A stretch of 64,000 nt of DNA from Macrostomum hystrix (GCA_950097015.1 CATNEN010000007.1:11470001-11534000), one strand, 5' to 3'. Positions 11,626 through 64,000 are shown, counted from the first letter of the stretch. Notes: generated by a model from the sequence alone, not told the origin. Program-made: numbers and translations.

Positions 11626-13044
11626 ATGGAGTCTAGCATGAGCAATGAAGCATGGCGCTGCATAATTCTGGCGAATCTGATGAAATTTGCCTGCAAGCTT
11701 GTTGAGTTTGAGTTCAGCTCATTGGATCCGATTAACTTCCGGTTGAACGATACCGGAAATGAGACTGTGTGCATCTTCGATGACAGCCAAACTGATGCCA
11801 GTGCGCCCAGGCAGAGTTTCACAGCGTGGATTTACACTGCGAGGTACACGATCCCAGTTCTGGGCGGGCTGATGTCCAGCGCTTGGCTTGGATGCACCAA
11901 GGTTCTTCAAATCGGTGGTTCCGTGATGATGCTGTCGACAGTTCTCCTATCTGTTTCTGTGTACCTCGGACTCATGTGCCAAGGATCTCCACTAATTCCT
12001 GTCACGTGGCTTCTTCTACCGTTGCTGTATGGTCTCATCCAGCCCAATATTTTGCTGACGTTGTTTCGCTGGTATCGCAGGAACAAATTAAGCACAGTGG
12101 TTACTTCGATATACTATGCTGTCGCAGCATTTGGCGAGCTGGTTTCCATGCCCTTCGCCTACACTAAGATAGTTCAGGCTTTGGGAAATAACTTCACACT
12201 GGTGCTCGTGGTTGTGAGTGCCCTCTTCTTGACGCTGACAGTGTTCTTACCAGAACTGCGAGAGGAGGAGCCGTTTGAACTTCCACGACGAAGTAGAATG
12301 ATAAAGTACTTCCAAGTCTTCTCGGCGTTGATTCTCTTCTTGACCTTCGTTGGTGATGATAGATCAAAGATACACAAATTTGAAATCAGCACCTTCATGA
12401 ACGAGACGATCGACATTACTGAGCACCCATGGCTGTCACCCGATTTCGTGAAAAACCTCAGCTTGATCTTCTTCGCTTTGGTGACAATTTTAGCTTCGCT
12501 CAAGAGCCGGAGAAGGCTGTCAGTGCCGTCACGCATGCTGTCCGGAGTTCTGCTGAAGGCTGCAACCGAGCTGCTTCTTGTTATAGTCACAGCGGTTGGA
12601 CTGACCAGGTCATCAACTGTGGCTGTGTACTCTCTGGTCTCCATCCTCGACGGAGCGTCAGAGCTGCTGGTGATGGTCGCAGCCTACGATCTCGGGTGCT
12701 CGATCCTTCCAGGCAGCGCTCAGTGTCTGATACTCGGTGTGATGTACACTGTCAGAGGCCTTTCTAACTTCGTGAGTCGCGGGTTGCTATTTATCGCGCT
12801 TGAAATTTTCAAGGCGCGAATAGGAACCAGACCATTGTTCTTCGTGTACCATCTGATCGCTCTCCTGATGCTTATGGGCTGCTTTGCTTGCTGCAAATTA
12901 CTTTCTCTGAAGATTGCAGCTAGCTTTCCCGAAACCGAAGAAGAAGAAAATGACACGGACGAAGAGCATTCGGACCAGTTTATTGACGACGATTGCTATC
13001 AGGGCTCGAACTCAGAGCGGCGCCCTTTGTTGAACGCAGCGTAA
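11626..13044 (+). CDS. Intronless POT/PTR2 (SLC15-like) MFS transporter, divergent, copy 1
   Basis: Multi-pass membrane ORF. YTIPVLGGLMSSAWLGCTKVLQIGG corresponds to the PTR2 Y-x-x-P-x-x-G-G-x-x-A-D-x-x-L-G motif, and SELLVMVAAYDLGCSILPGSAQ corresponds to the TM10 E..GLEF.YS.AP.SM segment. Paralog alignment favours the ATG at 11626 or 11638 rather than 11548. Confidence 0.75.
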   Translation: MESSMSNEAWRCIILANLMKFACKLVEFEFSSLDPINFRLNDTGNETVCIFDDSQTDASAPRQSFTAWIYTARYTIPVLGGLMSSAWLGCTKVLQIGGSVMMLSTVLLSVSVYLGLMCQGSPLIPVTWLLLPLLYGLIQPNILLTLFRWYRRNKLSTVVTSIYYAVAAFGELVSMPFAYTKIVQALGNNFTLVLVVVSALFLTLTVFLPELREEEPFELPRRSRMIKYFQVFSALILFLTFVGDDRSKIHKFEISTFMNETIDITEHPWLSPDFVKNLSLIFFALVTILASLKSRRRLSVPSRMLSGVLLKAATELLLVIVTAVGLTRSSTVAVYSLVSILDGASELLVMVAAYDLGCSILPGSAQCLILGVMYTVRGLSNFVSRGLLFIALEIFKARIGTRPLFFVYHLIALLMLMGCFACCKLLSLKIAASFPETEEEENDTDEEHSDQFIDDDCYQGSNSERRPLLNAA

Positions 13045-16175: not shown

Positions 16176-17603
16176 ATGCTAACAAACGCTCAAAAAATGT
16201 GCAGTATTTTCTTCGCCGGCCTGATGAAGCTACTGTACAAGCTTGTCGAGACGGAATTCAGCTCGCTGGATCCAAGCAACTTCCGTGAACTAAACAGCAC
16301 AGGAAACGGCACAGACTGGAGGAAAAGCACAGAGAACTGTCGATTTAATGTCGACAGAAGTGACGACGCGTCTGGGAGCCAGTCCCTCACGAAGTGGATT
16401 TACACTGCCAGGTACCTGATTCCAGTTCTCGGAGGACTACTGTCTAGCGCGTGGCTTGGATGCAACAAGGTCCTACAGATTGGTGGCTCCCTGATGCTGC
16501 TATCTACGGTTCTTCTGTCTGTGTCAGTGTACTTCGGGCTCATCTGCCACTTCTCTCCGATAATTATCTGTGCATGGCTGCTGCTACCAGTATTCTACGG
16601 ACTTATTCAGCCGAATATTTTGTTCATTATGTTCATTTGGAATCGTAGAAACAAGTTTTCCACTATTGTGTCCTCCATACACTATTCGGTCTCAACATTC
16701 GGATACCTGGTTTCCGTGGAGTTCGTATACACAAAAGCCTTTCGTTTGCTTGGCAGCAGCTTCACGCTTCTCTTCGTGGCTGTGAGTTTTATCTTTCTGA
16801 CAATTATCGTAACATTACCGAAAATCCCTGAAGAGGAGCCCTTTGAACTACCGACCCGGAGAAGGATGGTGAAATACTTCCAAGTATTTTCAGCTCTGAT
16901 CTTGTTCTTGACGTTTGTGAGCGACGACCGACCAACAGTTTACATAATTGAAATGAGCCACTTCACGAACTCAACGTTTGACACCGTCAATAAACCTTGG
17001 CTGGATCCAGAATGGGTTGAAAACCTGACAATGGTTGTCATGGCACCGCCGATGATACTCGCGACATTCAAGAGCCGGAGGCGTTTACCTTTTCCCTTCC
17101 GCATGTTTTTGGGGATTTTTTTAAAAGCTGCGGTCGAGTTGTTTCTGATTGTTGTTACTTTAGTCGGACTCAAAAGCAAGTCCGGAGCAGTAGCTGTGTA
17201 CTCCGGAGTCTCGATATTCGACGGAATATCAGAGTTCATGTTCATGGTGGCTGCCTACGATCTCGGATGCTCGATTCTTCCCACCAGCGCCCAGTGCCTG
17301 ATCCTCGGCGTCATGTACACAGTGAGAGATCTATCGAACTTGGTCAGTCACGGGCTGCTACTGATTTCCATCGAGATTTTTAAGATTCGAGCCGGCTCGA
17401 AGCCGCTGTTCTTCGTGTACCACCTGATTGCGCTCCTGGTGCTAATGGTCTGCTTTCTGTATCACAAATTCGTCACTCTGAAAATTGCTGCTCAACTTTC
17501 TGAGCCAGAAGATGATATTGCGGACGTTCACGCCCAGCTTATTGCTGACGATAGCCCTGTGAACTCGAACGACGAACGGCAATGCGTTTTAAATGCTTCA
17601 TAA
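16176..17603 (+). CDS. Intronless POT/SLC15-like MFS transporter, divergent, copy 2
   Basis: 475-aa ORF, collinear with copy 1 (YLIPVLGGLLSSAWLG; EEEPFELP; SEFMFMVAAYDLGCSILP; FFVYHLIALL). Confidence 0.8.
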   Translation: MLTNAQKMCSIFFAGLMKLLYKLVETEFSSLDPSNFRELNSTGNGTDWRKSTENCRFNVDRSDDASGSQSLTKWIYTARYLIPVLGGLLSSAWLGCNKVLQIGGSLMLLSTVLLSVSVYFGLICHFSPIIICAWLLLPVFYGLIQPNILFIMFIWNRRNKFSTIVSSIHYSVSTFGYLVSVEFVYTKAFRLLGSSFTLLFVAVSFIFLTIIVTLPKIPEEEPFELPTRRRMVKYFQVFSALILFLTFVSDDRPTVYIIEMSHFTNSTFDTVNKPWLDPEWVENLTMVVMAPPMILATFKSRRRLPFPFRMFLGIFLKAAVELFLIVVTLVGLKSKSGAVAVYSGVSIFDGISEFMFMVAAYDLGCSILPTSAQCLILGVMYTVRDLSNLVSHGLLLISIEIFKIRAGSKPLFFVYHLIALLVLMVCFLYHKFVTLKIAAQLSEPEDDIADVHAQLIADDSPVNSNDERQCVLNAS

Positions 17604-20608: not shown

Positions 20609-22184
20609 ATGAGAGCTTCGGCATGGCACTGCATACTGCTGGCCAGTCAGATGAAGCTCTTGTGCAAGATTATCGAGATCGAATTTAGCACTCTGGATCC
20701 CAGGAACTTTCGCCGAACAAGCCCTGACAACAATGGCACAGATTCGCGAAAAATCGGCGAGTCGTGTTACTTTGATGGCAGCGAGAAGGAAAGTTCATCA
20801 GGAGCTAGCGTGACACTTTACGCAGTGGATTTACATCTCTCGATACATCATGCCGATTCTGGGTGGAGCCATATCCACTGCCTGGCTCGGATACATCAAG
20901 GTTCTTCAGATCGGGGGCTGTATCATGCTGCTATCAACAGTTCTTCTGTCAGTGTCAATGTATCTCGGCCCTATGTGCCAGGAATCTCCGATCATTCCAA
21001 TCACTTGGCTGCTTCTGCCATTGTTCTTTGGACTAGTTTAGCCAAATATTCTGCTCACCATGTTTCGCTGGCACAGGTACCATAAGCTTTGTACGGTGGT
21101 TTCCACGATCTATTACGGCGCTGCCGCTTTTGGACAGTTGATCTCCACATCACTGGTCCATTTCGCCAACACTCACGCTCTTGGGAGCAATTTCGCGCTG
21201 TTGTTTGTGGCTATGAGCATCTTCTTCCTGACACTGACTATGTTTCTACCACAATTTTGGGAGGAGCGTTCCTTCGAAATGCCGACGAATCAGAGGATGA
21301 TGAAGTACTTTCAAGTTTTTTCTGTTCTAATTTTATTTTTGATGTTTTTGAGTGACTCACGTTCCAAAATGTACGTGCTGGAAATAAACCACTTCTTGAA
21401 TGGCACCGTTGACTTTGTCTCTCAACCGTGGCTGTCACCTGACTGGGTAAAATGCCTCAGTTTAGTGGTCCTTGCTCCACCAATGATACTCGTTGTGATT
21501 AAGAGCCGGAGAAGGCTTACCGTGTCATCCCGCATGCTGTCTGGCATTATTTTAAAGGCTGCAATGGAACTAGTCCTGCTGGTTATCAGCAAAGTAGGGC
21601 TGAGCAGTTCATTAACAGTTGGTACGTATTCTGCAATCTCTGTTATCGATGGGGTTTCTGAGTTTCTCGTGATGATCACAGCGTACGACCTTGGTTGCTC
21701 GATTTTGCCTAGCAACGCGCAGTGTCTGATCATCGGTGTCATGTTTACCATTTGGGGAATCGCGAACTTTGCTAGCTATGGATTACTCTGGATCAGTGAC
21801 CAATTCAGAAGTAACAGCCCTGGATCGAGTTCGCAGTTTTTCGCCTATCATCTCATCGCCCTCCTGTCTCTATTTGCCTGCTTTGCTTACCACAAATTCT
21901 TCACGCTGCCGATTGCAGCGCAGCTTGTCGAGCGTTCGGAATATGAAGACATTGATTCAGCAGCTGATGAGCAGCTCACTGATGTCAGCTGGGTCGAATC
22001 TGCGCCAACAGTCTCAGTTATTTTTTTTCTCATCCTCATCATCTATCTCATGAGGAGCTCCTCATCTATTTTTTTCACGCCGGAGATCTCTTTCGTAAGC
22101 TGTCCCGGAGCTGCTAAAGTAACTACTGTTGCCGTTTTCATGACTTCTGTTCCAGAATTCACTTCTAAGCCCAGCAAGAAATAA
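20609..22184 (+). pseudogene. POT/SLC15-like transporter copy 3, disrupted
   Basis: Homologous to the other copies but split over three ORFs. There is a frameshift near 20800-20817 (FTQWIYISRY moves frame) and an in-frame TAG at 21039-21041, where paralogs have Q or H (GLV*PNIL). Confidence 0.8.
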
Positions 22185-22753: not shown

Positions 22754-24470
22754 TTAAAGAATTTCAACTGATTTTGTGATTGATATAGGCAATTACGCTT
22801 CTATTTACACTTTACTGGACACTAATCAATTTCTGTCTCCAGCCTTATTCAGGAATCGTCAAATCGTCAGGAATCGGACAATATCCGCTTCGTCATTTAT
22901 ATGTGCCTGCAGCTAGGCAAGAAAACTTAAAAAATTCAATTTTGAATAATTCTGACGGGCAAACGAGCAAAATAAGACGAAAGTTCGTCTGGGTGACCCT
23001 GGACATCCGTGACTGAGAAATTTTACCATTTTCTTCAACTTCCAGGGCGGGTCTATGAGACTTCCCTCAGAGTATTTCCCGCTGAGGTTGCGGATAAGTC
23101 TCGGCGCGGAAAAATCTGCGGAAAAACTTTGCTGCAGTACATTCTGGCGCGTGAAAAACGTCTGCGGGAAAGTATCGTGCTCCCGCCTGGACAGCACGCG
23201 GCGGTCGAAATTTTTTCTGAGGGCTCGGTGACCGCCAACACTGAAACCGTGCTACCGGCTCTCTCGCCAGTGGAGTGGTGCCAGGCGGCTGCTGCACCAC
23301 GACAATTCAGCACCCACACTGCACTGCAGCTTCCTGGAGCAGCAAGTAGTTCAGCTGCAAATCTATTCCCCTGTTCCATTGTAAGCGATGTGCTGTAGTC
23401 TGCTGAGCAGCCTCCAGGCAATCTGTGTGGTTAGAGCAGTCTAGGTACTGTGGGAGGGTTCGGGAGTAGGGAAATTTGCGGTTACCCGTGCACACTCATT
23501 TCCACTCGCCACCCCCTCCTCTTTCTCTCTCTCGTTCCAGCTCTGTGTGCGCACTGACTCACATTGCACTCCATGGTGCAATCGCTTCGGTTCGGAAGAA
23601 GACTGGCAGAACATCGCTCAAATGCTCCTACTATGAGTAGAGCACAGTCCGAAAAATACACGGGATGGTGTTTGCATCGTGGAAGTTCACTTCAAGCACC
23701 GTAGTCGAGCACCTAGGCTAGATTTTCTTCATGCTTTTTAGTCGTAGATTTTAAGTTTAGGACATTTCTTGTGTTCATCCGAGAGACGAAAACACGCTAT
23801 TTTCTAAGATTCATTAAGACTTAAGGAATTCCCATTCCCTGATCCCATCTTTGCTGGAGAAGTTAGCGATCCCAAGCCTGACTACCCGGTCGCTCCACTG
23901 CTAGGAAGCATCAGTGTTGAGGCCGGTAAAACCCCATCTGAGTCTTAGCGTTCCCTGTCTTGGTCATTTACCAATTGCGTGGAGCCACGCTACCACAGGT
24001 ACAACATGAGCTAGCGAAAACTAAAACATTTCCTCAGTCACATCACAAAGCATTTGCACATCAGAATTGTTAAGTATTAAAAATGTCTCTATCCTTCATT
24101 GCCGGCACTTCACAGTACTTTTGGTGTAAGAGACACTGCCATGTGCCCAAGCAACAGAGGCAAATGGCACCAGGAGAACAAACGAGTGGGTGCAGCAACT
24201 GATATTTAAATTTAATTTGCACACTGATCCGATTGCGTTTGCACAATCTGCGGTCTCCTGCTTGTCGTCCTCACGAATAAAATTTGAGGCACCTGCAGCT
24301 AGAAACGAGTCACTGAGTGACTGCATTTTGATGTGCGGGAAGCAAGAAAATTGTTTATAAATTTAGCCCTTCTTTCACCTGCAGCCGCAATAAATCTGAC
24401 GTGCAACACGACAATTCACTTGAAAGATTTTCGGTACTGTTTCTGCACTGCTGGTAACTCGCCCAGTGAA

Positions 24471-25862
24471 ATGCTCTCCCCAGCTTGGCACTGCATTCTC
24501 ATGGCCACTCAGATGAAGCTCGTCTATAAGATTGTACAAAATGAGTTTAGCTGTCTGGATCCAAGGAGCTTCCATATCACGAACCAGACGGAAAGACACG
24601 CACCGATCCAAGCAACCAAATGCTACTTTGACAGCAACCAAAGCGATGCCAGCATCACAACCAGCGGCCAGCTTTTCACGCAGTACATATACTTTGCGAG
24701 GTACATGATGCCCATTCTCGGTGGAACACTATCCAGCGCCTGGCTCGGATGCAACCGGCTTCTTCAGATCGGAGGCATTGTGATGTTTTTATCGACGGTT
24801 CTACTCTCGACCTCAGTGTATCTGGGTCTGATGTGCGGCTCCCCAATCATTCAAGTGACGTGGCTTCTCTTGCCCTTGTTTGTAGGGCTTGTGCATCCCA
24901 ACGTTCTGCTCGCAATGTTCTGCTGGCATAGGAATAACAAGTTGTGCACCGCCGTCTCCCTGATCTACTATTCCACTGCTACTTTTGGAGACTTGATTTC
25001 ACTTCCGGTGGTGCAACTCGCTTTCATCCGTACTTTTGGAAACGGTTTCACACTTCTGTTTGTAACACTGAGCGCCTTCTTCCTCACGCTCACTTTGTTT
25101 CTACCTGAAGTTAAGGAGGAGGAGCCTTTTATGCTGCCGACTCGAACGAGAATGCTCAAATACTTTCAGGTGTTCTCCGCGCAGATTTTATTTCTCATTT
25201 TTGTAAGTGACGCACGCGCTACAATGTACCTATCGGAAATGCGCTTATTCATGGGTGAAGCACTGGATACGGTGTCGCATCCCTGGCTGTCACCTGATTG
25301 CGTAAAACGCATTAGCTTTCTAGTCATTGCACAACCGATGATATTTGTAGTGGTCAAGCGCCGAAGGAGATTGTCTGTGCCCTCTCGAATGCTGTCGGGA
25401 ATTATGCTCAAGGCTATAGTCGAGCTTTTTCTAACTGTTGTCACTGCCGGGAGACTGCTCAGTGGTTCAGCAACGGTGGCTGTGTACACAGTAGTATCCG
25501 CCCTGGACGGAGTATCTGAGTTTCTTGTAATGATCGCCGCCTACGATCTCGGGTTCTCGATCATGCCGAGCAGCGCCCAGAGTCTGATCATCGGGGTCAT
25601 GTTTACAGTTTGGGGCATTGCTAACTTTGCGAGCCGCGGACTGCTCCTGCTTGTGGGCGAAATCAGCCGCAATGCAACCGGAGCGAAGCCGCAGTTCTTT
25701 GTCTATCACCTGATAGCCCTGCTGTGCCTGTTGTTTAGTATTCTGTACAACAAGTTCGTTATCTTGCCCATTGCTGATCAGCTCGTCGTTGCCGAGGACG
25801 ATAGGGAAAATTTGCGAGATAACGCTGAAATCACAGACGAAGGCACAGAATTCATACAATGA
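24471..25862 (+). CDS. Intronless POT/SLC15-like MFS transporter, divergent, copy 4
   Basis: Collinear with the other copies. The ATG at 24471 (MLSPAWHCILMA) aligns with paralog starts. Confidence 0.8.
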   Translation: MLSPAWHCILMATQMKLVYKIVQNEFSCLDPRSFHITNQTERHAPIQATKCYFDSNQSDASITTSGQLFTQYIYFARYMMPILGGTLSSAWLGCNRLLQIGGIVMFLSTVLLSTSVYLGLMCGSPIIQVTWLLLPLFVGLVHPNVLLAMFCWHRNNKLCTAVSLIYYSTATFGDLISLPVVQLAFIRTFGNGFTLLFVTLSAFFLTLTLFLPEVKEEEPFMLPTRTRMLKYFQVFSAQILFLIFVSDARATMYLSEMRLFMGEALDTVSHPWLSPDCVKRISFLVIAQPMIFVVVKRRRRLSVPSRMLSGIMLKAIVELFLTVVTAGRLLSGSATVAVYTVVSALDGVSEFLVMIAAYDLGFSIMPSSAQSLIIGVMFTVWGIANFASRGLLLLVGEISRNATGAKPQFFVYHLIALLCLLFSILYNKFVILPIADQLVVAEDDRENLRDNAEITDEGTEFIQ

Positions 25863-45973: not shown

Positions 45974-46088
45974 TGCAGCTTTGAGTCTGAGTCTGTTAAA
46001 ACACTCCGAGTGCAGCTTTGAGTCTGAGTCTGTTAAAACACTCCGAGTGCAGCTTTGAGTCTGAGTCTGTTAAAACTCTCCGAGTGCA
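45974..46088. repeat. ~38-bp tandem repeat, 3 copies
   Basis: Unit TGCAGCTTTGAGTCTGAGTCTGTTAAAACACTCCGAG. Confidence 0.88.
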
Positions 46089-46814
46089 GATTTGAGCAGG
46101 CGCCAAGCAGCAGAAGCCAGGCAAGTGAGAAGGACACGAATAACTGCCGGGCGCACGAGCGCCTAAACTGCAGCTGCTCGGCGCGTCACGGCGAGGTCGG
46201 GCGGGTGCGGAACTCAATAACTCCGCATCAAACTGAGCAGGGGAGGAGGGTCTCACATGCCGCCTTGGAGGCGCCAATTTTCATATCCTCCGCCTGGCCG
46301 CTTCGCTGTTGTCTGCTTATAATATTGGCCTGCTCACCGACTGTTCTCAACCGGCCCTATTTGCTTTGCTGTAAGAAAGTACAGCAGACCTTCTCCTAGC
46401 TCTACTCAGCAGGGGAGGCTGTTTTTCTAATAGATAATTTCTGAATAAATAACTGGAGCATTGCGGTCCTCAATGGCCGGGCAAACATGTCGCTTTGGCT
46501 TTCGACACTGCCGGCAACTCGGCGCGACTTTGTCAGGCCGATTGCGTGCCGCCCGTGACCGCCTCCCCCAGCCGCTCCGTGCCGCGCGGAAATCGAGGCC
46601 AGACAGAGTCCTTCCCACCCGAACCGCACGCACGGAGCAGTAACCCGAAGGACAGAGCTGGGTGACAAGACGGGAGAAAAGGTAAGAGCAAAATGGAACA
46701 GATAGAGCTGTGGGGAATCGAGAATAAAAGCACTGGAAATAAGTTGATGCTTGAAGATAGCGAGACATTGAAACCAGCAAAAGTGAGGCAGAGGGATAAG
46801 AATAGAGGAGATTT

Positions 46815-47291
46815 AGAGAGGTGAGGGGAGATGGAGGTTGAGAGGAGATGGAGGGTGAGGGGAGATGGAGATTATAGGAGGGTGAGAGGTGAGAGGAGAT
46901 GGAGGGTGAGGGGAGATGGAGGGTGAGAGGAGATGGAGGGTGAGGGGAGATGGAGGGTGAGGGGAGATGGAGGGTGAGAGGAGATGGAGGGTGAGGGGAG
47001 ATGGAGGGTGAGAGGAGATGGAGGGTGAGGGGAGATGGAGGGTGAGGGGAGATGGAGGGTGAGAGGAGATGGAGGGTGAGGGGAGATGGAGGGTGAGGGG
47101 AGATGGAGGGTGAGGGGAGATGGAGGGTGAGGGGAGATGGAGGGTGAGAGGAGATGGAGGGTGAGGGGAGATGGAGGGTGAGAGGAGATGGAGGGTGAGG
47201 GGAGATGGAGGGTGAGGGGAGATGGAGGGTGAGGGGAGATGGAGGGTGAGGGGAGATGGAGGGTGAGGGGAGATGGAGGGTGAGGGGAGAT
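46815..47291. repeat. 17-bp purine/G-rich minisatellite
   Basis: Unit GGAGGGTGAG(G/A)GGAGAT. Confidence 0.95.
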
Positions 47292-47949
47292 TATGTGTGA
47301 GAGGTGAGATATGTTGGGTGAGATTAGATGGAGATTGAGGAAAAGGAGAGAGGTGATAGAGAGTAAGGAAACAGATCTAGTGGACGGGTTAATAGAAATA
47401 GGTGTCACATAAAGCGGCAGTCCCATTGTATCAATCTACCCAGAGGGAAGCCATGATTAAAGGCTTGTCAGACTGAGCCTCCGGGTCACAGGGTTGCTGT
47501 GGCGACAAGGGCGCGGATGTGGAGGTGAGGGAGAATGAGGGTCCAGGGCAAGGGGGAAAAGATCAAGGGAAAAGTGCCAGCGCCGAGAAGGCAGGTCAAT
47601 ATAGTGTGTTGTTCTCAAAGAATAAATCAAAGCGGCATTTGGATGGCCCTGAGCTGGCGATTGGTATCGAGAATCCGCTGTATCTGTAAAAAGCAAATGG
47701 CGGAGAAGCAATTTATTGAGCCTTCGCAGAGGCGCGTACATGGGTCAGAACTCGGACACATTCCTCGCTGGGATGTCGAAGAGATTCTCGGCTGGCTACA
47801 TACCCTATCAAAATAATGACAAAGCTAAACGGAAATAAATGGAACTAAACGATGCGCTGCACTACTTAAAGTAGAGAAGAAGGAAGGACGGAATCAGGCT
47901 AAGTCTGGCCACTTTGGCTAAAGTTCAACCATAAACAACGGCCGTCTCT

Positions 47950-48678
47950 TCAAAAGCTCTCGGCATTGTCAGAAACCTGGATAACACTTCCGTTGCCAAC
48001 GATGTTGAGCAAGCCATTCTGGTAGCTTCGGCCAGAAGACTGCTGCGGCTGCCGATGCGCTGGGGGGCTCGGCGGTGGTGACGGGTTTGGCTGCGGCGGA
48101 CGCTGCTCCTCAGCAACATGCGGAGCCCCCGTGCGGTCCAGCGGCTGCGGCAGCTGTTGTGGATTGCTGCCCTGCCGCTCCGCTCCGTGGTTCAAAATCG
48201 GCGGCGGCGCTCCGAGCTGCTGCGCCGGCTGGGCAACCAGGGTCGCATCCCGCCTGCCGTTGTTCCCCTGGGCCGCAATCGGCTTGATGACGTCCGAGGC
48301 CCTGCTTGAAGCCAAGGTGGTGCCGCGAGAGTTGAAGGCGGAGTCGCAGGCACACTGGGCTGAGAAGCGGGAGTCATGGGCTGAGTAGCGGGAGTCATAG
48401 GCTGAGTCGCGAGAGCCCTTGGCTGAGTAGCGTGAGTCATGGGCTGAGTCGCGCAATGTGCTGACGGCCTGGCTGCGGCGGTTCAGTTCAACCAGGAATT
48501 TTTCCAGCTCGGCCTCGCCGAACGGCTGTTTCTTGATGTCTCGGAACTTGTCGGAGAGTCGCTTGGAGTGGTTCTTTGCCAGGAAGTCCTCGGTGCTGAG
48601 ATTTTTGGGTAAGTGCTTCTTGAAGAATTTCTTCACTCTTGGGTTGCCATTCAGGTCCTCAACGAATTCGCGGATCAT
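47950..48678 (-). CDS. Unknown protein, novel family member A (helical N-domain, DSAxDS repeats, Pro/Gln linker, C-terminal RHIM-like motif)
   Basis: 242-aa ORF from ATG 48678 with GC3-rich codons. Its N-domain (KRLSDKFRDIKKQPFGEAELEKFLVEL) and C-terminal QNGLLNIVGNGSVIQV are homologous to the neighbouring ORFs. Confidence 0.7.
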   Translation of the reverse strand: MIREFVEDLNGNPRVKKFFKKHLPKNLSTEDFLAKNHSKRLSDKFRDIKKQPFGEAELEKFLVELNRRSQAVSTLRDSAHDSRYSAKGSRDSAYDSRYSAHDSRFSAQCACDSAFNSRGTTLASSRASDVIKPIAAQGNNGRRDATLVAQPAQQLGAPPPILNHGAERQGSNPQQLPQPLDRTGAPHVAEEQRPPQPNPSPPPSPPAHRQPQQSSGRSYQNGLLNIVGNGSVIQVSDNAESF

Positions 48679-48929
48679 TTTCGCGGACTGAACTGAAAAC
48701 AAGCGATAGAAGAGCAGTTGAGTTGTTGACTGCTATATTTAATCACTCTAATAGGGCACTGATTTAGAGTTTAGCGCATTGTTACGGGGAACTTTGCAAA
48801 GTGGAGAAGACAAGGCACCTGTTGAATCATGGTCTAAAAATAGCCATGAGCTCTCTGAAGTGACAAGCAATGGAGAGCTATGAAAGACAAAAAAACGGTC
48901 GTAAAAACTATGCTATACTTCTGACACTA

Positions 48930-49485
48930 TTATACATTATAATATGCATGGAGACACTCGTACATGAATGTAACTAATGTTCTTGTAGCTGCAGAGTTCA
49001 GGCTGCTCTCAGAAATCGCATCATAGATCCTCCTTGCAAGGACAGCAGAGGATCTGCTGTCCTTCTTTGGCTGACGGACACGAGCAAGTATCGGGGCCTC
49101 TGGTCCAGCAGGTGTCATTGCGGTGGGCCTCAGCGCTCGCAGCCTCAGCCAGCAATGCGTGGCACTAAGCCGACCGCGAAGCAGCTTGTGCCGCGGTGGC
49201 ACGGGCGCAGCGAAGCTCGGGTAGAAGCTCTCGAGGCTGCAACAGCCGGAGTCAGCGCTGTCTCCGAGTGTCTGAAGCTTCTCAGGCAAATCGTGAAAGT
49301 TCCTGAGGTACTGTAGGGCCTCGTCCAGCCTGTTCTGTGAGAATTGCTGTGGACTTTGCTTGGAGAATTTATTGTAAAAGCAATGCTGCTTTAGCAATGC
49401 TGCTTTAGCAGAAGGAGCTGGTGAACATCTTGACGCAGTCGTCACCACGCCAGGAATTCAGGGCGAGAATATCTTCGCAGGGCAT
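48930..49485 (-). pseudogene. Novel family member B, disrupted
   Basis: MPCEDILALNSWRGDDCVKMFTSSFC* aligns to the start of member C (MSFEVQQALKSWPGDQRVMKYVGSFC). A stop and a 14-bp tandem duplication at about 49380-49410 follow. Another frame then resumes with KFSKQSPQQFSQNRLDEALQYLRNF and DSGCCS. Confidence 0.7.
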
Positions 49486-49689
49486 TCCATAGGTCTAGGC
49501 AAAAGAAAAGCAGAATAGGTTGGTGAGTTGCGCACACAGCTATCAGCTATGCCATGCTATTTGGAGAAGAAACAACACAAGCGAGTTACGTCTTAGTTAT
49601 CAAGCTACTGAAAAGACTGACTCATCGATAAGCAAAAAGCAAACGACTTGGCAACCAGACTATTGAATTCCAGTAAATGCATAAAAAAA

Positions 49690-49952
49690 CAACGTGCCAC
49701 TTGAAATCCATGCGCAAGCGGCACAGTGCCAGCTTCCAAAAGCAATACAGCTGCCTGCTCAGTCCATGGACCGTACCTCACCTCACCCATCCAGATTTTT
49801 ACCGCAGCTTCTCAGCCGAGGAACTGAAGCAAGGAGGAATTGGTTTGTGGGCACACATCGTTCCCCGGAGCAGAGATTTGAACCCACGACCTCTATCTTG
49901 GCCACTCTAAAGAGTATGAATCTCTAGACCACAACATGTAGGCCACAACCCC
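49690..49952 (-). mobile_element. tRNA-derived SINE-like element
   Basis: The minus strand begins GGGGTTGTGGCCTA..GTGGTCTAGA (A-box-like), followed by GGTCGTGGGTTCAAATC (B-box, 49875-49885) and a non-tRNA body. The 3' boundary is approximate. Confidence 0.5.
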
Positions 49953-50354
49953 TTTTGAATTTATGAAAAGCTTTGAACGACACAGCAAATGCTTGATCCC
50001 GATGAATTGAACAAAGACTGCACTAGGTGGGCCGAGTACAATGTCAAATAAGGTCAGTTTTTTAGAAAAAACAGAGCAAAAGTCAAAATGTTTTTTGCTT
50101 TGCTCTACGTCTCAGTTTCATTTCTTAGTTGTTACATAAACTTGATAACACGGAGTGACGTCCCGATGAAAATCTGGTTTTGTGGGCAGCAGAAGCCTAA
50201 TATGGAACAAAGACTAAATGAATTGTTCTTGCAGAAATGTAGCCAGCTTCATCTTCTATCGCTGGCTTCTCAAATCTATCGAAAACTGCTTGAATTATCG
50301 GTGCTGTACAGAATTGTACGAAATGGTACGGCCAGGAATTGCAGTGCATCAAAC

Positions 50355-50430
50355 GGAATGGTACTGTCCGGTATGGAATGGTACTGTACGGTATGGAATG
50401 GTACTGTCCGGTATGGAATGGTACTGTAAA
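50355..50430. repeat. 20-bp tandem repeat, ~4 copies
   Basis: Unit GGTATGGAATGGTACTGT(C/A)C. Confidence 0.85.
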
Positions 50431-50659
50431 GTACGGAATAGTTTGCGGAATAGTATGGAGTTGTTTAATGCGGCTTGCAATCACAATAGTATCGAACACA
50501 GTAGCATACATTTTCTAAGACTATATCAATCAAGGCCTACCGCATTTTCCATGCAATAAAATTGCATATGAAATGTTTACGAATAAGGACAAGAAATGTA
50601 CAAGAGCAGGAAGGCCCACTCAGACGGTGTACAGTATGAGACGAATGTTGGTTGTACTT

Positions 50660-51628
50660 TTAGCCCCACTTGGGGCCCGCACTCTGCAGCATAAGCAACG
50701 CGGATAAGTCGCAGTCGACTAAATTTTTCGTGCCACGAATGTTCAAACAGCCGTTCTGGCTGCACTGTTCGCGGCTGCTCCTCTCTTTAGCATCCACAAT
50801 GGCGGCGCGCCTGCTTTGAGCGGCCCTGTGCTCGCCTCGAGCTTCCCCGCTGGCAGCCGACGGCTTGACGCAGGCGGCCGTATTAGCCAGACTGTGGCGC
50901 GGTCGTGGTGTCGGAACCTGAACACCAACCAGGGCGTTCCCGTTGCATGGCTCGCCGACGCAGATCTTTGACCTCTCGTTAGATGAGTAGCTTTCTGAGT
51001 ACTGCCCACGCTCAGGACCATCAGAATAGGCGACTGAGGCCGCTTGAGAACAATCGCAAGTTTCATCACTGAGCCCTCCAAAGGAGTCCAGATTGGTTGG
51101 GTCGTCAGTGGCCGTGCAGCGCGCTAAAGTGCGTCTTGGCCGCGGTTTCGCTGGCTTGACTTCTGGCTTCTCATCCAAGATATCGTATGGGTTTTCAATG
51201 CTTTGTAGCACGTCCTGATTTGCACATGTAGGCGTCACAGAACTCATCTCGCTGCTCGATTCTGTGGGCACAGGTGGTAGAGGTCGGTCAGCTACTGAAG
51301 CCGAGGTGTTGCTGAATTTGCTGAAACCGGGCTGGCGATCCCCAAGACTGCTGACACTGTCGTATCCGGATTCAACATGGCTTCTGCGCGCCGTGAGTTG
51401 CTGGTGCTGCTTCTGGTACTTTCTGAGATAGTCCAAAGCCTCTTCCAGTTGGTTGCAAGAGAATTTCTGCCTCTTCTGCTTGGCAAACTTTTCCTTCAGG
51501 CTTCGCTCCTGCCGCTCGCTGAGGAACTCTTGAAGGCTTGAGTTCTTCGAGCAGAAGGAACCGACGTATTTCATGACGCGCTGGTCACCGGGCCAAGATT
51601 TCAAAGCCTGCTGCACTTCGAAAGACAT
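50660..51628 (-). CDS. Unknown protein, novel family member C (helical N-domain, ESGYDS, SH3-ligand-like motifs, C-terminal RHIM-like motif)
   Basis: 322-aa ORF from ATG 51628 with an N-domain homologous to members A, B and D. Contains RPLPPVP, ENPYDIL, KPRPRR, PTPRPR and a C-terminal QNGCLNIRGTKNLV. Confidence 0.72.
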   Translation of the reverse strand: MSFEVQQALKSWPGDQRVMKYVGSFCSKNSSLQEFLSERQERSLKEKFAKQKRQKFSCNQLEEALDYLRKYQKQHQQLTARRSHVESGYDSVSSLGDRQPGFSKFSNTSASVADRPLPPVPTESSSEMSSVTPTCANQDVLQSIENPYDILDEKPEVKPAKPRPRRTLARCTATDDPTNLDSFGGLSDETCDCSQAASVAYSDGPERGQYSESYSSNERSKICVGEPCNGNALVGVQVPTPRPRHSLANTAACVKPSAASGEARGEHRAAQSRRAAIVDAKERSSREQCSQNGCLNIRGTKNLVDCDLSALLMLQSAGPKWG

Positions 51629-52068
51629 TTTAAGATCGGATCGAGCAGCCAGGCAGTGGAGCGAATATCGCAAAAGTGGCTCTGAATGCTGTTTGCGAGC
51701 TAATACGACACCCAAAAAACAAATCGAGCGCCGAAATTCGGTGCAGCGGAGCAGATGTTTTCAGGCCAGCAGGGACTCGACCTCGTATAATTTAACCCTT
51801 TCTCACCATCGGCCAACATTGTTCTCGCTATTTTTAGCAAATTAGTTACTTGAGATGCAAATACCTTCTAAGATAGAAATGATGCAACTTTCAGAACAAA
51901 CATTACTGAGAATCGCTCGTGAACTGTTAACGAGGTACATACCTCGTATTTATAAATAGCAATTAGAATAGTTTCCTCTACAAAGGAATTAAATTGAGAA
52001 TAAAAGCCTCAAACGTTTCATGGAAGTCTAACGGCAGAAAGTACAAGCTACTGTGCATTAAAAACAAC

Positions 52069-52950
52069 ATGGTGTCAGAACTCATCCAGCTGAGGCATCA
52101 GCAGAGACAGCCTACATTTCGCGAGGAACATGAATGCAGTTACGAGTTTCGACCGGTCCATCGTGACTTAGTGATTTTCTTCAAAACGCAAAAGGCACGC
52201 AGATGCCTGCAGAACTACCTAATGGAAGTGCAACTGGTCACGGAGGTGCGGGAACTGGTGGAGTACCGACAGAGAATCGTCGAAAGAACCAAAGCCAGGA
52301 AGCAGCGCTTTTCGTCCGATGAGCTCACAAAGGTGCTGGACAACGCCCGACTGTGGACCCGCTGTGACAGCGCCGAGAACTACCATGAGCATGCTCCGGA
52401 GAAGCCAAAGAAGAAGCGCTGGAGCAACTCGCTGAAGGCGACCCGCACCAGCAAGGAGTTGGTGAGGTTCCTGAAAAAGGAGGGCGTCAAGTCCAGGCAG
52501 GAACTCGTGGCTAAGGCGGACATGCTGATTAATAAGTACGAAGTGAAGGCCAGACCGTTCTCCCTGCTGGACCTGAAGGAACTCGTCACCGAATTCAGCC
52601 AGCCGCCGCTGTCAGCAGAGCGAAAAAATAGCGGCACCGATGACTCGAATTCCGGTGACAGCGAGGAGACCGCGGCTCGACCGCAGCCCAAGCCGCGGCG
52701 GGCTTCGCGTCCAATTAGAAGCTGGAACTCTGTTGGCAGCCTGCCCGTGTCTGAGGAAGACGGCCTGCAGCGAGAGACTCCAGGGGGCGCTGGTGGCAGC
52801 CGGAGCGATATGCTGGACGTCGGTGTTACCCAGACTGGGGGGCTCGTCAATATAATCGGCCATGAGAACAACTTGAAGCTGGGGCTGACAGGACACAGCC
52901 AGTGGCCGGAGATAAGAGGCGCTTCTTTGTGGAGGCCACAGCGCAACTGA
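52069..52950 (+). CDS. Unknown protein, novel family member D (two copies of the helical domain, C-terminal RHIM-like motif)
   Basis: 293-aa ORF from ATG 52069, head-to-head with member C, with TATAAATA at 51951. Domain ends RKQRFSSDELTKVL and KARPFSLLDLKELV, followed by PQPKPRR and a C-terminal QTGGLVNIIGHENNLKL. Confidence 0.72.
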   Translation: MVSELIQLRHQQRQPTFREEHECSYEFRPVHRDLVIFFKTQKARRCLQNYLMEVQLVTEVRELVEYRQRIVERTKARKQRFSSDELTKVLDNARLWTRCDSAENYHEHAPEKPKKKRWSNSLKATRTSKELVRFLKKEGVKSRQELVAKADMLINKYEVKARPFSLLDLKELVTEFSQPPLSAERKNSGTDDSNSGDSEETAARPQPKPRRASRPIRSWNSVGSLPVSEEDGLQRETPGGAGGSRSDMLDVGVTQTGGLVNIIGHENNLKLGLTGHSQWPEIRGASLWRPQRN

Positions 52951-53531
52951 ACTGCGAACCACTGGTCGCTCTTTTAAACGCTCTGGCAAGGTGGTCAAAA
53001 TGTTTTCAATTTAGAAATCATTTAATTTTTCTGCACCACTTTTATTCTTTGGTGCTTTCCGCATCATTTCTCGTAGATAGACTTGTTGGAAACTATGCAT
53101 AGACGTTTACGCTAAAGTAGAAAGCATTGAGTACTATTTTTAATTTACACTTTAACATCAAAATCAACAGTTCATCGTAAATCTAGGAGTGAGTACACCC
53201 GCTGATAATGAGAGATGCACTAACACTTGCGAGTACTAACACCTGGGAGTTGCTATGCTAGAGCAGCTCGATGCGCAAAGCAACAAAGTAGAATTCTCGA
53301 ATTATAAATATATACTCGCACATCTCGCCCTTCGTTGAATGCTAACACAGAGAATGCAGCGGCTTGACAGATCTTTAATCAGAAAGCGTACCTAGGAATA
53401 TACAGCACAACCCACCCAGACACAATAGGTGCGCTGAATTGCGAGCCCACTGAGCTGTGCTCACGAGTTTATTGCCCAGAGAACACTGTGCAAGCCGCAG
53501 TAAATAACTCGAGTAGAAGAAGCATTTAGGC

Positions 53532-53890
53532 TGCAAACTCGCATCTGTTGCAGTCCCAGTGGTTTGTGAGGATTCGCAGGATAAGTCAATGCAAACTCGC
53601 ATCTGTTGCAGTCCCAGTGGTTTGTGAGGATTCACAGGATAAGTTAATGCAAACTCGGATCTGTTGCAGTCCCAGTGGTTTGTGAGGATTCACAGGATAA
53701 GTTAATGCAAACTCGGATCTGTTGCAGTCCCAGTGGTTTGTGAGGATTCACAGGATAAGTTAATGCAAACTCGGATCTGTTGCAGTCCCAGTGGTTTGTG
53801 AGGATTCACAGGATAAGTTAATGCAAACTCGGATCTGTTGCAGTCCCAGTGGTTTGTGAGGATTCACAGGATAAGTTAATGCAAACTCGG
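53532..53890. repeat. 58-bp minisatellite, ~6 copies
   Basis: Unit AATGCAAACTCGGATCTGTTGCAGTCCCAGTGGTTTGTGAGGATTCACAGGATAAGTT. Confidence 0.95.
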
Positions 53891-54299
53891 TAATCCAAAA
53901 TTAGTTTCAAAACAATAAATCCACAGAGCAGCAGCGGCAGGTAATTTATTATCCGTGTATTCGGTGCACCTCTTCAGGTGAAGAAAAACAAGAGAAATAC
54001 GGAAGTAGAAACTGAAGGAACACAACTCAAACAAATATCGGGTAGTCTCAATGAAAAGAGTTGCTATGCAAATAATTTTTCTGTTTTCGGTACGAAAATA
54101 GCAGGTATAACAGAGACCCGCAATCTTTCTCGGGGAAGGACAGATGTTCTGCGAGGTGGAGAATGGAACACAGCGCACGCTAGTCTTTATTCTGGGCTCC
54201 GTGCACACACGTAACAAGACACACAATTTAGCGCAGAAAGAACTGCTGCTGATCACTGGATCCACAAGAGTGGAAAGCAAGGCTGCAGATAGGAGTGAG

Positions 54300-55030
54300 A
54301 GACGAGCTGGAAGGCTGAGATTGGACTTAGAAGGCTGGAAGAGGAGCTGGAAGGCTGGGAGAGGAGCTGGAAGGCTGGGGGAGAAGCTAGAAGGCTGGGA
54401 GAGGAGCTGGAAGGCTGGGAGAGGATTTGGAAGGCTGGGAGAGGAGCTGGAAGGCTGGGAGAGGAGCAGGAAGGCTGGGAGAGGATTTGGAAGGCTGGGA
54501 GAGGAGCTGGAAGGCTGGGAGAGGATTTGGAAGGCTGGGAGAGGATTTGGAAGGCTGGGAGAGGAGCTGGAAGGCTGGGAGAGGATTTGGAAGGCTGGGA
54601 GAGGATTTGGAAGGCTGGGAGAGGAGCTGGAAGGCTGGGAGAGGATTTGGAAGGCTGGGAGAGGATTTGGAAGGCTGGGAGAGGATTTGGAAGGCTGGGA
54701 GAGGAGCTGGAAGGCTGGGAGAGGAGCTGGAAGGCTGGGAGAGGATTTGGAAGGCTGGGAGACGAGCTGGAAGGCTGGGAGAGAAGCTGGAAGGCTGGGA
54801 TTGGACTTGGAAGGCTGGGATTGGACTTGGAAGGCTGGAAGAGGAGCTGGAAGGCTGGGAGAGGAGCTGGAAGGCTGGGAGAGGATTTGGAAGGCTGGGA
54901 GAGGAGCTGGAAGGCTGGGAGAGGAGTTGGAAGGCTGGGGGAGAAGCTGGAAGGCTGGAAGAGGAGCTGGAAGACTGGGACAGGAGCTGGAAGGCTGGGA
55001 GAGGAGCTGGAAGACTTGGAGAGGATTTTG
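54300..55030. repeat. 20-bp minisatellite, ~36 copies
   Basis: Unit GAGGA(GC/TT)TGGAAGGCTGGGA. Confidence 0.96.
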
Positions 55031-62246: not shown

Positions 62247-63672
62247 TTAGTGGCGCTTTGGCCTGCCACACGAGCAGCTGATGGGCGCGCCAGCGGCGTA
62301 GGCCTTGTTAGCCTTGTCGTCTAGCCAGGGTAGAGTTTTCCCAACCGAAGTCTGCGTCACCACCGGTTCCAGCGGCTGCCCCGGCCAGGGTGAAAGCTTT
62401 TCGCCTTCGGGGGAGGCCGCGGGAGCAGCTTTAGAGGCGCCATAGGCAGCTGACCTATCACCGCTGCCTGGAGCTTTCTGTTAATAGTTGCGTTCGGCAG
62501 GCCGGTTATAAATTCGCAAGTGCAGGTGAGCAGGTGAGCTGGGCGTGACTGAGTATTCAAGCAGACTGAGAACAAGGTCAGGAAATACTTGACGCCAACG
62601 ATTGACTCGGTTGCCAGAAATGAACATGTCTCAGTTGTAATTAGCAATACAAGACAGCACGAGTGCTCATTGAAGCTCCCAGATCTCAATGCCCGCTTTT
62701 TACCATCTACCTGCTTTCCGTCCTAAACTTTCCCATCACCTTCCCTCACTATCTTCCCATCACCTTCCCTCTCTATCTTCCAATCACCTTCCCTCCCTAT
62801 CTTCCCATCACCTTCCCTCTCTATCTTCCCATCACCTTCCCTCTCTATCTTCTCTTCCCTCTTTCTCTATCTTCCCTTCGCCTTCCCTCTATCTTTCAAT
62901 ATACCTCTCCTCCCTCCTCTCCTCCATATCGTCATCTTCCCTCCCCCTCTCTCTTTCCTTCACATTTTCTTTACTTTACTTCCTTTCTTTTCCAACCTCG
63001 ATTCCCTGCGTTCTCATTGTTCCCAAAAGCAGCTGAAGTATCTCAGTTGCCCCCGTAATCCCGGGCGCCCACCTGGAAGTACTCCTTGCTCAGACTGGGG
63101 TCCGGCTTCATGGTGCGTTCGCCGGGCCGCCAGCCGGCGGGGCAGACCACACCGTGCTTGTCGGCGTGTTGGAAGGCCTGCACGAGGCGCAGCGTCTCGT
63201 CGACTGAGCGGCCCACCGGCAGGTCGTTTAGCGTCACCTGGCGAAGCAGGCCGCGGTCGCTGATGATGAAGAGGCCGCGGTAGGCGATGCCCTCGTCTGC
63301 CTTGAGCACCCCGTAGGCGCGGCTGAGAGCCTGGTTGCGGTCAGCCAGCAGCGGCATGTTGACGCGGCCCAGGCCGCCCTCCTGCCTTGGCATGTTGGTC
63401 CAGGCCAGGTGCACAAAGTGCGAGTCGGTGCTGCAGGCCAGCAACTCGCAGTTGACCCGGCGGAATTCGTCGACTCGGTCGGAGAAAGCTACGATCTCCG
63501 TCGGGCAAACGAATGTGAAGTCGGCCGGATAGAAGAACAGCACCACATACTTGCCCGAGTAGTCGCTAAGGCGAACGTCAGCGAAACTCTGGTCGGGCAT
63601 CAGGGCCTTACAGGTGAAGCCCGGGGCAGCGGAACCCGGCTGCAGCGGTGACGGCTGCGGCTGCTCCCCACC
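62247..63672 (-). CDS. Typical 2-Cys peroxiredoxin (Prx1/AhpC subfamily), 5'-partial; core exon 63073-63672 and probable terminal exon 62247-62477
   Basis: Motifs [15 protein letters not shown] (peroxidatic Cys), [21 protein letters not shown] (resolving Cys) and EYF. A TTGCAG acceptor at 63673 with no suitable ATG implies an upstream exon that was not identified. The terminal exon is inferred from a phase-0 CAG|GTGGGC donor and an AACAG| acceptor. Confidence 0.9.
62730..62990. repeat. Pyrimidine-rich low-complexity tract with ~24-bp repeats
   Basis: TCTTCCCATCACCTTCCCTCTCTA units, followed by a CT-rich tract. Confidence 0.85.
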
Positions 63673-64000
63673 CTGCAATGTAAAAGCGAATGTACTTTAA
63701 GAATCACGGCACCTTACAATAATAAACAGTACAGTAAGCTTATCAATGCCTGGCGGTTAGTAGAAAGAAATCATTGGATGCCAGGAGGCACAAATGCTAT
63801 TGCTCAACTTCGCTGCAAAATCACACCACGGGTTCGCATAAACTGATCAAAAAGTGCAGGCCCTTTTTATCAAACTAGGCCATTTGATAAGAACACAGTA
63901 TTTCGCTGGGCGGAGCAGTCAAAGCAGCCGTGTGTCTTATTTTTTGGTAAGCTAATTGGAGAAACGAATGAAACGCTGATTGTTTACCAGTCTTTCGCTG

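Follow-up and report, generated by a model that had tools for sequence, protein, structure and literature searches.

A small gene cluster of Macrostomum hystrix encodes putative modular adaptor proteins with a conserved C-terminal motif

Introduction

What might a set of neighbouring paralogues do when the only parts that they have clearly kept in common are a folded domain and a motif of about 16 residues near the C-terminus? This question is raised by a locus in the flatworm Macrostomum hystrix, positions 47950-52950 of a 64,000-nt stretch (hereafter the window; G000:C7:11470001-11534000 of a 220-Mb, 42-contig assembly), which carries three intact open reading frames (ORFs), here called A, C and D, together with a degenerate copy, B. 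An earlier reading of the DNA, made from sequence alone (the sequence-only reading), had proposed that these are unrecognised paralogues acting as signalling adaptors, assembled through a cryptic RHIM-like amyloid motif and serving immunity or cell death. We report here that A, C and D are transcribed genes, that their C-terminal motif is kept in a complete orthologue of D and recurs on a glutamine-rich ORF that has no such domain at its front, and that their N-terminal domain (N-domain) is a predicted five-helix bundle. We put at about even the chance that the cluster encodes Macrostomum-restricted, modular, soluble and non-enzymatic scaffold or adaptor proteins, in which the helical domain and the constrained tail would each give an interaction surface.

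Results and Discussion

Three transcribed genes and a silent pseudogene

The three intact ORFs lie where the sequence-only reading had placed them, and the cluster consists of the following elements (window coordinates).

47950-48678, minus strand: gene A coding sequence, 242 aa, single exon (ORF and transcript-like contigs of runs X5 and X6)
48356-48453, minus strand: coding 21-nt tandem repeat in A (7 aa, DSRYSAH-like), 4.7 copies (Tandem Repeats Finder)
48930-49500, minus strand: pseudogene B, closest to C, with two frameshifts and premature stops; tail and motif lost
49379-49410, minus strand: 14-nt tandem duplication in B, 2.3 copies, 100% match (Tandem Repeats Finder)
50054-50659, minus strand: probable 3' untranslated region (UTR) of C (contigs over 50054-50384 and 50395-51781; 20-nt tandem repeat at 50355-50439, Tandem Repeats Finder)
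50660-51628, minus strand: gene C coding sequence, 322 aa, single exon (ORF and X5/X6 contigs)
52069-52950, plus strand: gene D coding sequence, 293 aa (ORF and contigs; start backed by orthologues)

To assess expression of these genes, four public sequencing runs were compared with 47700-53200. X5 and X6 are of unrecorded kind but resemble transcriptome assemblies in their behaviour: A, C and D plus their UTRs are matched colinearly by long contigs that carry at most four mismatches. They run over 47700-48693 and on beyond 47700 for A, over 50395/50429-51781 for C (C and its 3' UTR being covered across 50054-51781), and over 52147-53200 and beyond for D, to which X3 adds a contig over 52074-52245. 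Contig depths are unequal, at 33-40 for A, 246-272 for C and 71-113 for D, and the intergenic stretch between C and D has zero contigs in X5 and X6. Judged by these contigs, which follow the genes colinearly and skip B and the intergenic DNA, A, C and D are intronless and transcribed, and transcript-like sequence thus exists for all three.

The start codons follow from similar considerations. An in-frame stop upstream makes 51628 the first ATG of C. For D, the X5 and X6 contigs both stop at 52147, right after an AG and at a codon start in the D frame; a start downstream of 52069, which these contig ends might suggest, was rejected since the orthologues described below conserve residues encoded upstream, with L8 and R9 kept in a conserved N-terminal segment of the alignment. 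This conservation, together with the X3 contig that spans 52074-52245, lets the start at 52069 stand. Trans-splicing at this AG (52145-52147), if it is a spliced-leader acceptor, could possibly give a shorter D isoform. C and D are arranged head-to-head with approximately 440 bp between their start codons (51628-52069), and they may share a bidirectional promoter.

Differences between the runs within the coding sequences comprise three synonymous changes, one non-synonymous change (R274P, in the linker of C) and two in-frame indels. C shows an in-frame length polymorphism, a 15-nt deletion at 50769-50783 that ends two codons before the first residue of its motif (Q291) and leaves the motif intact. 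Similarly, the copy number of the 21-nt repeat in A differs between runs, with an X3 contig skipping 42 nt (two units) in frame. In this small sample, the differences fit coding constraint.

That B is a pseudogene, as had been read from the sequence, is borne out by three-frame translation, premature stops and the 14-nt duplication. Its homology to C runs from frame 0 to frame 2 and back to frame 0, such that the translation reads MECPAKIFSP and a stop, then WRGDDCVKMFTSSFC and a stop, then ...KQHCFYNKFSKQSPQQFSQNRLDEALQYLRNF, and the C-terminal half is missing. One of the frameshifts arises because of the 14-nt duplication. B is matched by a hidden Markov model (HMM) of the N-domain at E 2.7e-23 among the window ORFs. 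No transcript contigs were found for B and depth is zero over 48804-49907 in all four runs; it is silent in these runs.

A constrained motif near the C-terminus

All three intact genes end in a short tail motif, confirmed at the places reported for it, and the linker and tail were modelled for D.

47974-48021, minus strand: tail motif of A, QNGLLNIVGNGSVIQV, 7 residues from the C-terminus (regular expression and DNA-pattern match)
50711-50758, minus strand: tail motif of C, QNGCLNIRGTKNLVDC, 16 residues from the C-terminus (regular expression and DNA-pattern match)
52612-52947, plus strand: tail of D, for which AlphaFold2 predicts no secondary structure, the pLDDT lying below 50 almost throughout
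52831-52881, plus strand: tail motif of D, QTGGLVNIIGHENNLKL, 22 residues from the C-terminus (regular expression and DNA-pattern match)

The motif spans approximately 16 residues and reads Q-x-G-x-φ-N-[IV]-x-G-x-x-[NS]-x-φ-x-φ, where φ is hydrophobic. The sequence-only reading was therefore right about a real C-terminal motif, whose pattern it had given as a glycine-to-hydrophobic half and which is better written G-x-φ-N-[IV]-x-G-x-x-[NS]-x-φ. In the AlphaFold2 model of D, residues 182-293, motif included, have no predicted structure.

A back-translated DNA pattern, G-x-[LVF]-N-I-x-G-x-x-[NS], was searched for in the whole genome and gave 71 matches as compared to 42 for a reversed control. 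Most of the 71 lie in tandem repeats, and among the matches examined (71 minus five, mostly tandem-repeat copies) only A, C and D have the pattern near the end of an open frame of at least 260 aa, the remaining non-repeat matches lying in open frames of 10-90 aa. Judged on this distribution, the motif in A, C and D is not a chance occurrence. The other matches were set aside as chance: L032 is antisense to an XPC-like gene (by eye), and L090, L091 and others fall in short frames of 10-90 aa or in tandem repeats.

Two familiar classes of C-terminal or linear motif were rejected by eye. For an LC8-binding site, TQT is present in D alone; for a PDZ ligand or a PTS1 signal, the proteins have no extreme C-terminal residues in common.

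Relatives in other Macrostomum

Pfam holds no family for A, C or D. A HMMER search of 1.84 billion representative proteins with a profile of A, C and D returned three matches only.

PAA93897.1 (BOX15_Mlig016461g1): M. lignano hypothetical protein, partial D orthologue
P0002: 230 aa, from Logan transcript contigs only, complete D orthologue
PAA49170.1: M. lignano hypothetical protein, 101-aa fragment of the A/C type

The M. lignano relatives, Mlig016461 and Mlig010168, show 38-47% protein identity to the cluster genes, a level expected of congeneric species. A search for homologous proteins found none with C, and known proteins only with the D alignment or with residues 36-200 of P0001. Therefore the description of these paralogues as unrecognised was apt, Pfam being empty and the relatives being annotated as hypothetical proteins only, and the family appears tiny and genus-restricted as far as the databases reach. 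In the literature we found no paper on Macrostomum and RHIM, nor on the two M. lignano locus tags.

The complete orthologue is what we consider decisive, at the level of sequence, for conservation of the motif. P0002, which stems from a different species, and D are about 36% identical overall; both N-domains align, and the flanks of the tail are unalignable. Within these diverged flanks P0002 keeps the motif, QSGLVNVCGQGNQVAL, and the protein ends ...ADQSGLVNVCGQGNQVALTIT. With typical residue frequencies, the estimated chance of the motif pattern in a 230-aa protein is about 2e-5. Conservation in a further homologue, on which the sequence-only reading had staked its proposal, is thus seen in P0002.

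The motif on a glutamine-rich protein

A 27-position profile of the A, C and D tails was also run against the whole genome and yielded one further open frame (E 0.5), on contig C38, with its motif at G000:C38:4097710-4097760.

L088:1471-2874 = G000:C38:4097680-4099083, minus strand: fifth motif carrier, a 467-aa open frame, candidate for a protein of approximately 470-520 aa

This ORF consists largely of about twenty 13-aa glutamine-rich repeats (QHQLEQQPTEQIL) and ends ...YKRLQSGPINIIGHGNVLRVQASVLPHRSS, with the motif QSGPINIIGHGNVLRV 10 residues before the stop. Its last 143 residues are colinear with the D tail (BLASTP E 0.001), and a Q-P-K-P island and NIIGH-x-N-x-L are identical between the two. 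A canonical GT-AG intron of 78 nt precedes the ORF and preserves its frame, which suggests that the ORF belongs to a genuine spliced gene. The N-domain is absent from it. The DNA pattern described above does not admit its isoleucine in position three and had therefore missed it; widening the pattern brought in nothing but chance matches (antisense to the XPC-like gene, and frames of 52-53 aa).

Because the tail occurs on two different front ends, it may be a transferable module. A peroxiredoxin gene 3 kb upstream of the fifth ORF has 77% protein identity to the peroxiredoxin at 63043-63678 of the window and lies in the same orientation, and the C38 and window loci are probably old duplicates. 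Across the five known instances of the motif (A, C, D, P0002 and the glutamine-rich ORF) it is always found near the C-terminus, 3-22 residues away.

An N-domain shared by all members and doubled in D

The second conserved island is the N-domain, found once in A and C and twice in D.

48454-48678, minus strand: N-domain of A, basic (pI 9.9) and helical, ending K-K-Q-P-F-G-x-x-E-L
51371-51628, minus strand: N-domain of C, predicted five-helix bundle (AlphaFold2)
52153-52368, plus strand: N-domain copy 1 of D (hhalign)
52405-52608, plus strand: N-domain copy 2 of D, five predicted helices, pLDDT about 80

The proposed basic helical island is real for A against C (BLASTP E=6e-8) and for B, and holds for D by profile tests. 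Pairwise BLASTP of D against A and C is marginal (E 0.12-0.16). With an HMM built from D and its two orthologues, the two best-scoring window ORFs out of 558, apart from D itself, are A (E 0.0035) and C (E 0.11), and hhalign aligns the A/C profile with D domain 1 at E 5.5e-4 and with D domain 2 at E 0.012. Common ancestry of D with A and C was accepted because these profile tests, the shared tail motif and adjacency all agree. The tandem pair in D, overlooked by the sequence-only reading, is indicated by hhalign of domain 1 against domain 2 (probability 87%, E 3.8e-6). F56 and L61, both part of K-x-[QR]-x-F-[SG]-x-x-x-L, do not vary among the five domain copies, and the pI is 9.4-10.5 in eight of nine copies. 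The N-domain profile matches only the five copies of this cluster in the 220-Mb genome, and no further D paralogue was found there.

For residues 1-92 of C, AlphaFold2 with the five-copy alignment gave a model with a mean pLDDT of 81 and a pTM of 0.66, in which helices span residues 3-10, 16-25, 32-35, 38-50 and 58-86. The D model repeats for domain 2 the helix order of C, again with five helices, and is less certain for domain 1. Structural alignment of C (VIA-align) returned the lambda-integrase core-binding domain (Z 6.1), the CNK/HYP SAM domain (Z 5.5) and the liprin SAM domain. Similarly, D domain 2 is best matched by the SAM domain of tankyrase-1 (Z 6.0, rmsd 2.4 A, 58/63 residues), followed by those of p73 (Z 5.7, 60/61) and Sans, SAM_PNT and the N-terminal domain of a Rad51 paralogue; AF1548 is a further match among these searches. 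We take all of these matches at Z 5-6 to belong to the SAM-domain-like fold class (SCOP a.60). In the ESM Atlas, C has a weak lead to SAM_1 (score 0.76), and D domain 2 has no usable match. Two models thus converge weakly on the SAM-domain-like fold class for the N-domain. By sequence it is not a SAM domain, with no Pfam match to SAM_1 (PF00536) at E<=1. The structural follow-up that the sequence-only reading had called for delivered a predicted five-helix fold and no significant Foldseek match.

Putative modular scaffold proteins

Taken together with the tail, this domain suggests how the proteins might work. One basic five-helix domain of SAM-like fold (A, C), or two (D), would form a binding or oligomerising surface, doubled in D. 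The fast-evolving linker, 100-200 residues rich in Ser, Pro, Ala, Gln or Gly, would carry proline-rich or basic short motifs: for example, RPLPPVP in the linker of C (51266-51286, minus strand, read from the sequence) fits what we take to be the class I SH3-ligand pattern R-x-x-P-x-x-P, and a third weak island common to the family, P-x-P-[KR]-P-R, had been overlooked. The tail motif would offer a second surface by strand-turn-strand pairing with another beta strand, either that of the same motif in a paralogue or that of a shared partner, and the proteins could thereby bridge or cluster partners. Tandem duplication gave rise to the family, in which copy B has since died, and the related tail on the glutamine-rich protein is suggestive of a transferable module. 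No signal peptide or transmembrane segment was found in the family proteins, whose maximal Kyte-Doolittle value in a 19-residue window is at most 0.7.

The closest parallels in build are the SAM scaffolds (tankyrase, CNK/HYP, Sans, SARM1), which are likewise modular and have a five-helix bundle of approximately 60-70 residues with the helix order predicted here; SARM1 has tandem SAM domains, as D has two N-domains in tandem. The family differs from them in lacking SAM_1 profile similarity (probability below 1%), in a Z of only about 6 and in an unusually basic domain. Even if the tail proves unrelated to amyloid, the family is a genus-restricted modular protein in which only the folded domain and the motif are conserved, so that the partner of the motif is directly testable, and in Macrostomum both RNAi and transgenesis exist. 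We regard the family as an interesting lead rather than a demonstrated system.

Several observations count against the scaffold interpretation. Every structural match has a Z of about 6 or less, within the tool's stated noise band for helical bundles; Foldseek with the C and D models returned nothing at E<=0.001; and hhalign of the N-domain and D profiles with 11 SAM_1 domains of this genome gave probabilities of 0.1-0.3%. The basic pI and the lambda-integrase and Rad51 N-terminal matches suit nucleic-acid binding as well as protein binding. The motif is known in five instances only, and the M. lignano D orthologue PAA93897.1, as annotated, is without it: this protein reaches '...AVQTG' at the expected place and then diverges into an Arg/Gly-rich sequence, possibly through a frameshift in the partial model. 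The score for a predicted complex of four A tails was 0.02, which counts neither for nor against binding, and each binding event, like the adaptor role itself, is something we infer.

A possible docking motif

Among the alternatives, the one that survives best, although we consider it unlikely, is that the tail is an ordinary docking motif that adds a beta strand to a globular partner, for example in the manner of a SUMO-interaction motif (SIM; ψ-ψ-x-ψ-ψ, here LLNIV, LVNII, PINII and LVNVC). The position near the C-terminus in every instance and the predicted lack of structure in the tail of D, the one tail modelled, would suit docking, and the core φ-φ-N-[IV]-φ fits what we take to be the hydrophobic SIM pattern ψ-ψ-x-ψ. 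However, the acidic or phospho-serine flanks usual in SIMs are absent, C has a weak core (CLNIR), and conservation reaches 8-10 residues past the core (G-x-x-N-x-φ-x-φ), which is beyond the need of a SIM.

A possible amyloid-type motif

Behind docking stands the reading that the tail is an amyloid-type homotypic motif (RHIM, cryptic RHIM (cRHIM) or an analogue of the fungal PP motif), with oligomerisation of the N-domain nucleating cross-beta assembly of A, C, D and the glutamine-rich protein; we think it improbable. The core tetrad of RHIMs is (V/I)-Q-(V/I/L/C)-G (PMC13506858), fungal PP motifs have a pseudopalindromic G-φ-Q-φ-G core flanked by N and G (PMC7885112), and both RHIM and HET-s motifs have unstructured flanks (PMC4262963). 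The downstream half of the family motif follows the RHIM pattern. G(0), N/S(+3), φ(+5) and φ(+7) are found in all five instances, and where the +3 position is Asn the fit to the RHIM pattern is exact. As expected for an 18-20-residue RHIM segment, the flanks of the D motif are unstructured in the AlphaFold2 model and G-x-x-N-x-(M/L/V) lies downstream of the core; the motif itself is rich in N, Q and G with alternating hydrophobics. Its G-x-φ-N-φ-x-G core is pseudopalindromic around N as the G-φ-Q-φ-G of PP and RHIM motifs is around Q (PMC7885112). Moreover, the motif occurs in two architectures and in adjacent paralogues.

The other half does not follow. By regular expression the canonical tetrad is absent from A, C, D, the L088 ORF and P0001-P0003, the core being φ-N-[IV]-x-G instead, and the span from G to G is six residues rather than four, so that the hydrophobic side chains come to lie in another register. 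PF12721 (RHIM) has no match in hmmscan at E<=10 in the three tails or in P0001, P0002 and P0003, and the tail profile, compared with every PDB chain at E<=10, matched a FliS chain only, with no RIPK, ZBP1, TRIF or HET-s among the matches. The resemblance depends on a degenerate pattern. Strict pattern and profile scans of the genome found the motif in A, C, D and the glutamine-rich ORF only, and on no receptor, kinase, TIR, death-fold or pore-forming protein; the partner proteins that the sequence-only reading had hoped for were not found in these scans. The motif is also absent from the 12 TIR loci inspected, none of which ends in a RHIM-like tail, in a genome with 44 TIR_2 matches. As an observation in its own right, G000:C38:17955000-17996000 (L059-L069) holds at least five near-identical genes with a TIR_2 domain, arranged in tandem.

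We therefore do not assign the family to the RHIMs, because of the six-residue Gly-to-Gly span, the missing tetrad, the lack of profile and PDB matches and the absence of a sensor or effector carrier from the strict genome scans. From the earlier proposal of an adaptor with a RHIM-like motif, the adaptor-like build and the G-x-x-N-x-φ-x-φ half stand, and the tetrad and the profile match do not. The tail may work like a RHIM. With the RHIM and cRHIM proteins (RIPK1, RIPK3, TRIF, ZBP1, M45; IMD, PGRP-LC/LE) it has in common a short N/Q/G-rich strand-turn-strand (approximately 16-18 aa) outside a folded domain, the same G-x-x-N-x-φ-x-φ half and its occurrence in otherwise different proteins. In contrast to them, it carries Asn where they have Gln, with an additional residue ahead of the Gly, and the family is without a kinase, TIR, death, Z-alpha or PGRP domain. 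With the PP and HET-s type (HELLP, NWD2/HET-S) it has in common a pseudopalindrome on an amide residue flanked by Gly and Asn (NGLLNIVGN in A), a C-terminal position and clustered carrier genes. It departs from the PP core in its spacing (G-x-φ-N-φ-x-G, with a central Asn and two extra residues) and from the PP and HET-s systems in that the search for the family turned up neither an NLR partner nor a membrane-targeting domain of HeLo type.

The role in immunity or cell death had been argued from rapid divergence, duplication and pseudogenisation, an argument that is generic and has gained no specific support. The neighbours of the cluster are a G-protein-coupled receptor, an ankyrin protein, a possible MFS-type transporter (below the Pfam cut-off) and a peroxiredoxin, and nothing in this neighbourhood points to immunity or cell death.

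A more specific proposal, less probable again, is that Macrostomum has its own amyloid-type motif (core G-x-φ-N-φ-x-G-x-x-N-x-φ), either evolved independently or retained in disguise as a structural analogue of RHIM and PP, which would sit on SAM-like oligomerising adaptors and on a glutamine-rich, prion-like protein, with clustering of the domains nucleating cross-beta assembly. To our knowledge, most of the canonical innate-immune adaptors are missing from flatworms, and the demonstrated cases of functional amyloid signalling come from vertebrates, arthropods, fungi and some bacteria. If the proposal is true, a RHIM-like tail on a lineage-specific scaffold would extend the amyloid-signalling principle to Platyhelminthes.

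Possible nucleic-acid binding

Weakest of all is the reading that the basic domain is a DNA- or RNA-binding one like the N-terminal domain of Rad51 or the core-binding domain of lambda integrase, which form other superfamilies of the SAM-domain-like fold, the proteins being lineage-specific chromatin or RNA proteins with a regulatory or localising tail: the high pI in eight of nine copies and the presence of the lambda-integrase domain (Z 6.1), the Rad51-paralogue domain and AF1548 among the top structural matches speak for it, but SAM protein-interaction domains rank equally high with all scores in the noise range, Pfam shows no helix-hairpin-helix signature, and the family shares a basic surface charge with the Rad51 and lambda-integrase domains but has no recombinase or ATPase domain attached.

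Other features of the surrounding DNA

By eye, the stretch at 49790-49910 (minus strand), between B and C, resembles the 3' half of a tRNA with a T-arm-like GGTTCAAATC, and may be a SINE or tRNA remnant; neither ARAGORN nor Rfam made a call on it. Rfam has nothing over 46000-54500, and ARAGORN found no tRNA in the window. Elsewhere in the window are four long plus-strand ORFs (374-509 aa), none of which matches a Pfam family at E<=0.001 (11548-13044, 16176-17603, 21060-22184 and 24333-25862).

Upstream of C lies a short segment from outside the family.

51708-51781, minus strand: 74-nt segment, 98.6% identical to L019:1531-1604 (G000:C31:~2465360)

Its counterpart on contig C31 is the end of a PLA2-like gene with a CCEVHDHCY motif, comprising the last six codons and the 3' UTR. 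Transcript contigs are falsely joined at 51781 because this copy fuses two transcripts in k-mer assemblies, and an apparent 5'-UTR intron of C at that position was accordingly rejected as a k-mer chimera. Finally, minisatellites flank the cluster at 46820-47291 (17 nt x 27.8), 53532-53890 (58 nt x 6.2) and 54299-55025 (20 nt x 36), and they give rise to long spurious ORFs in several frames.

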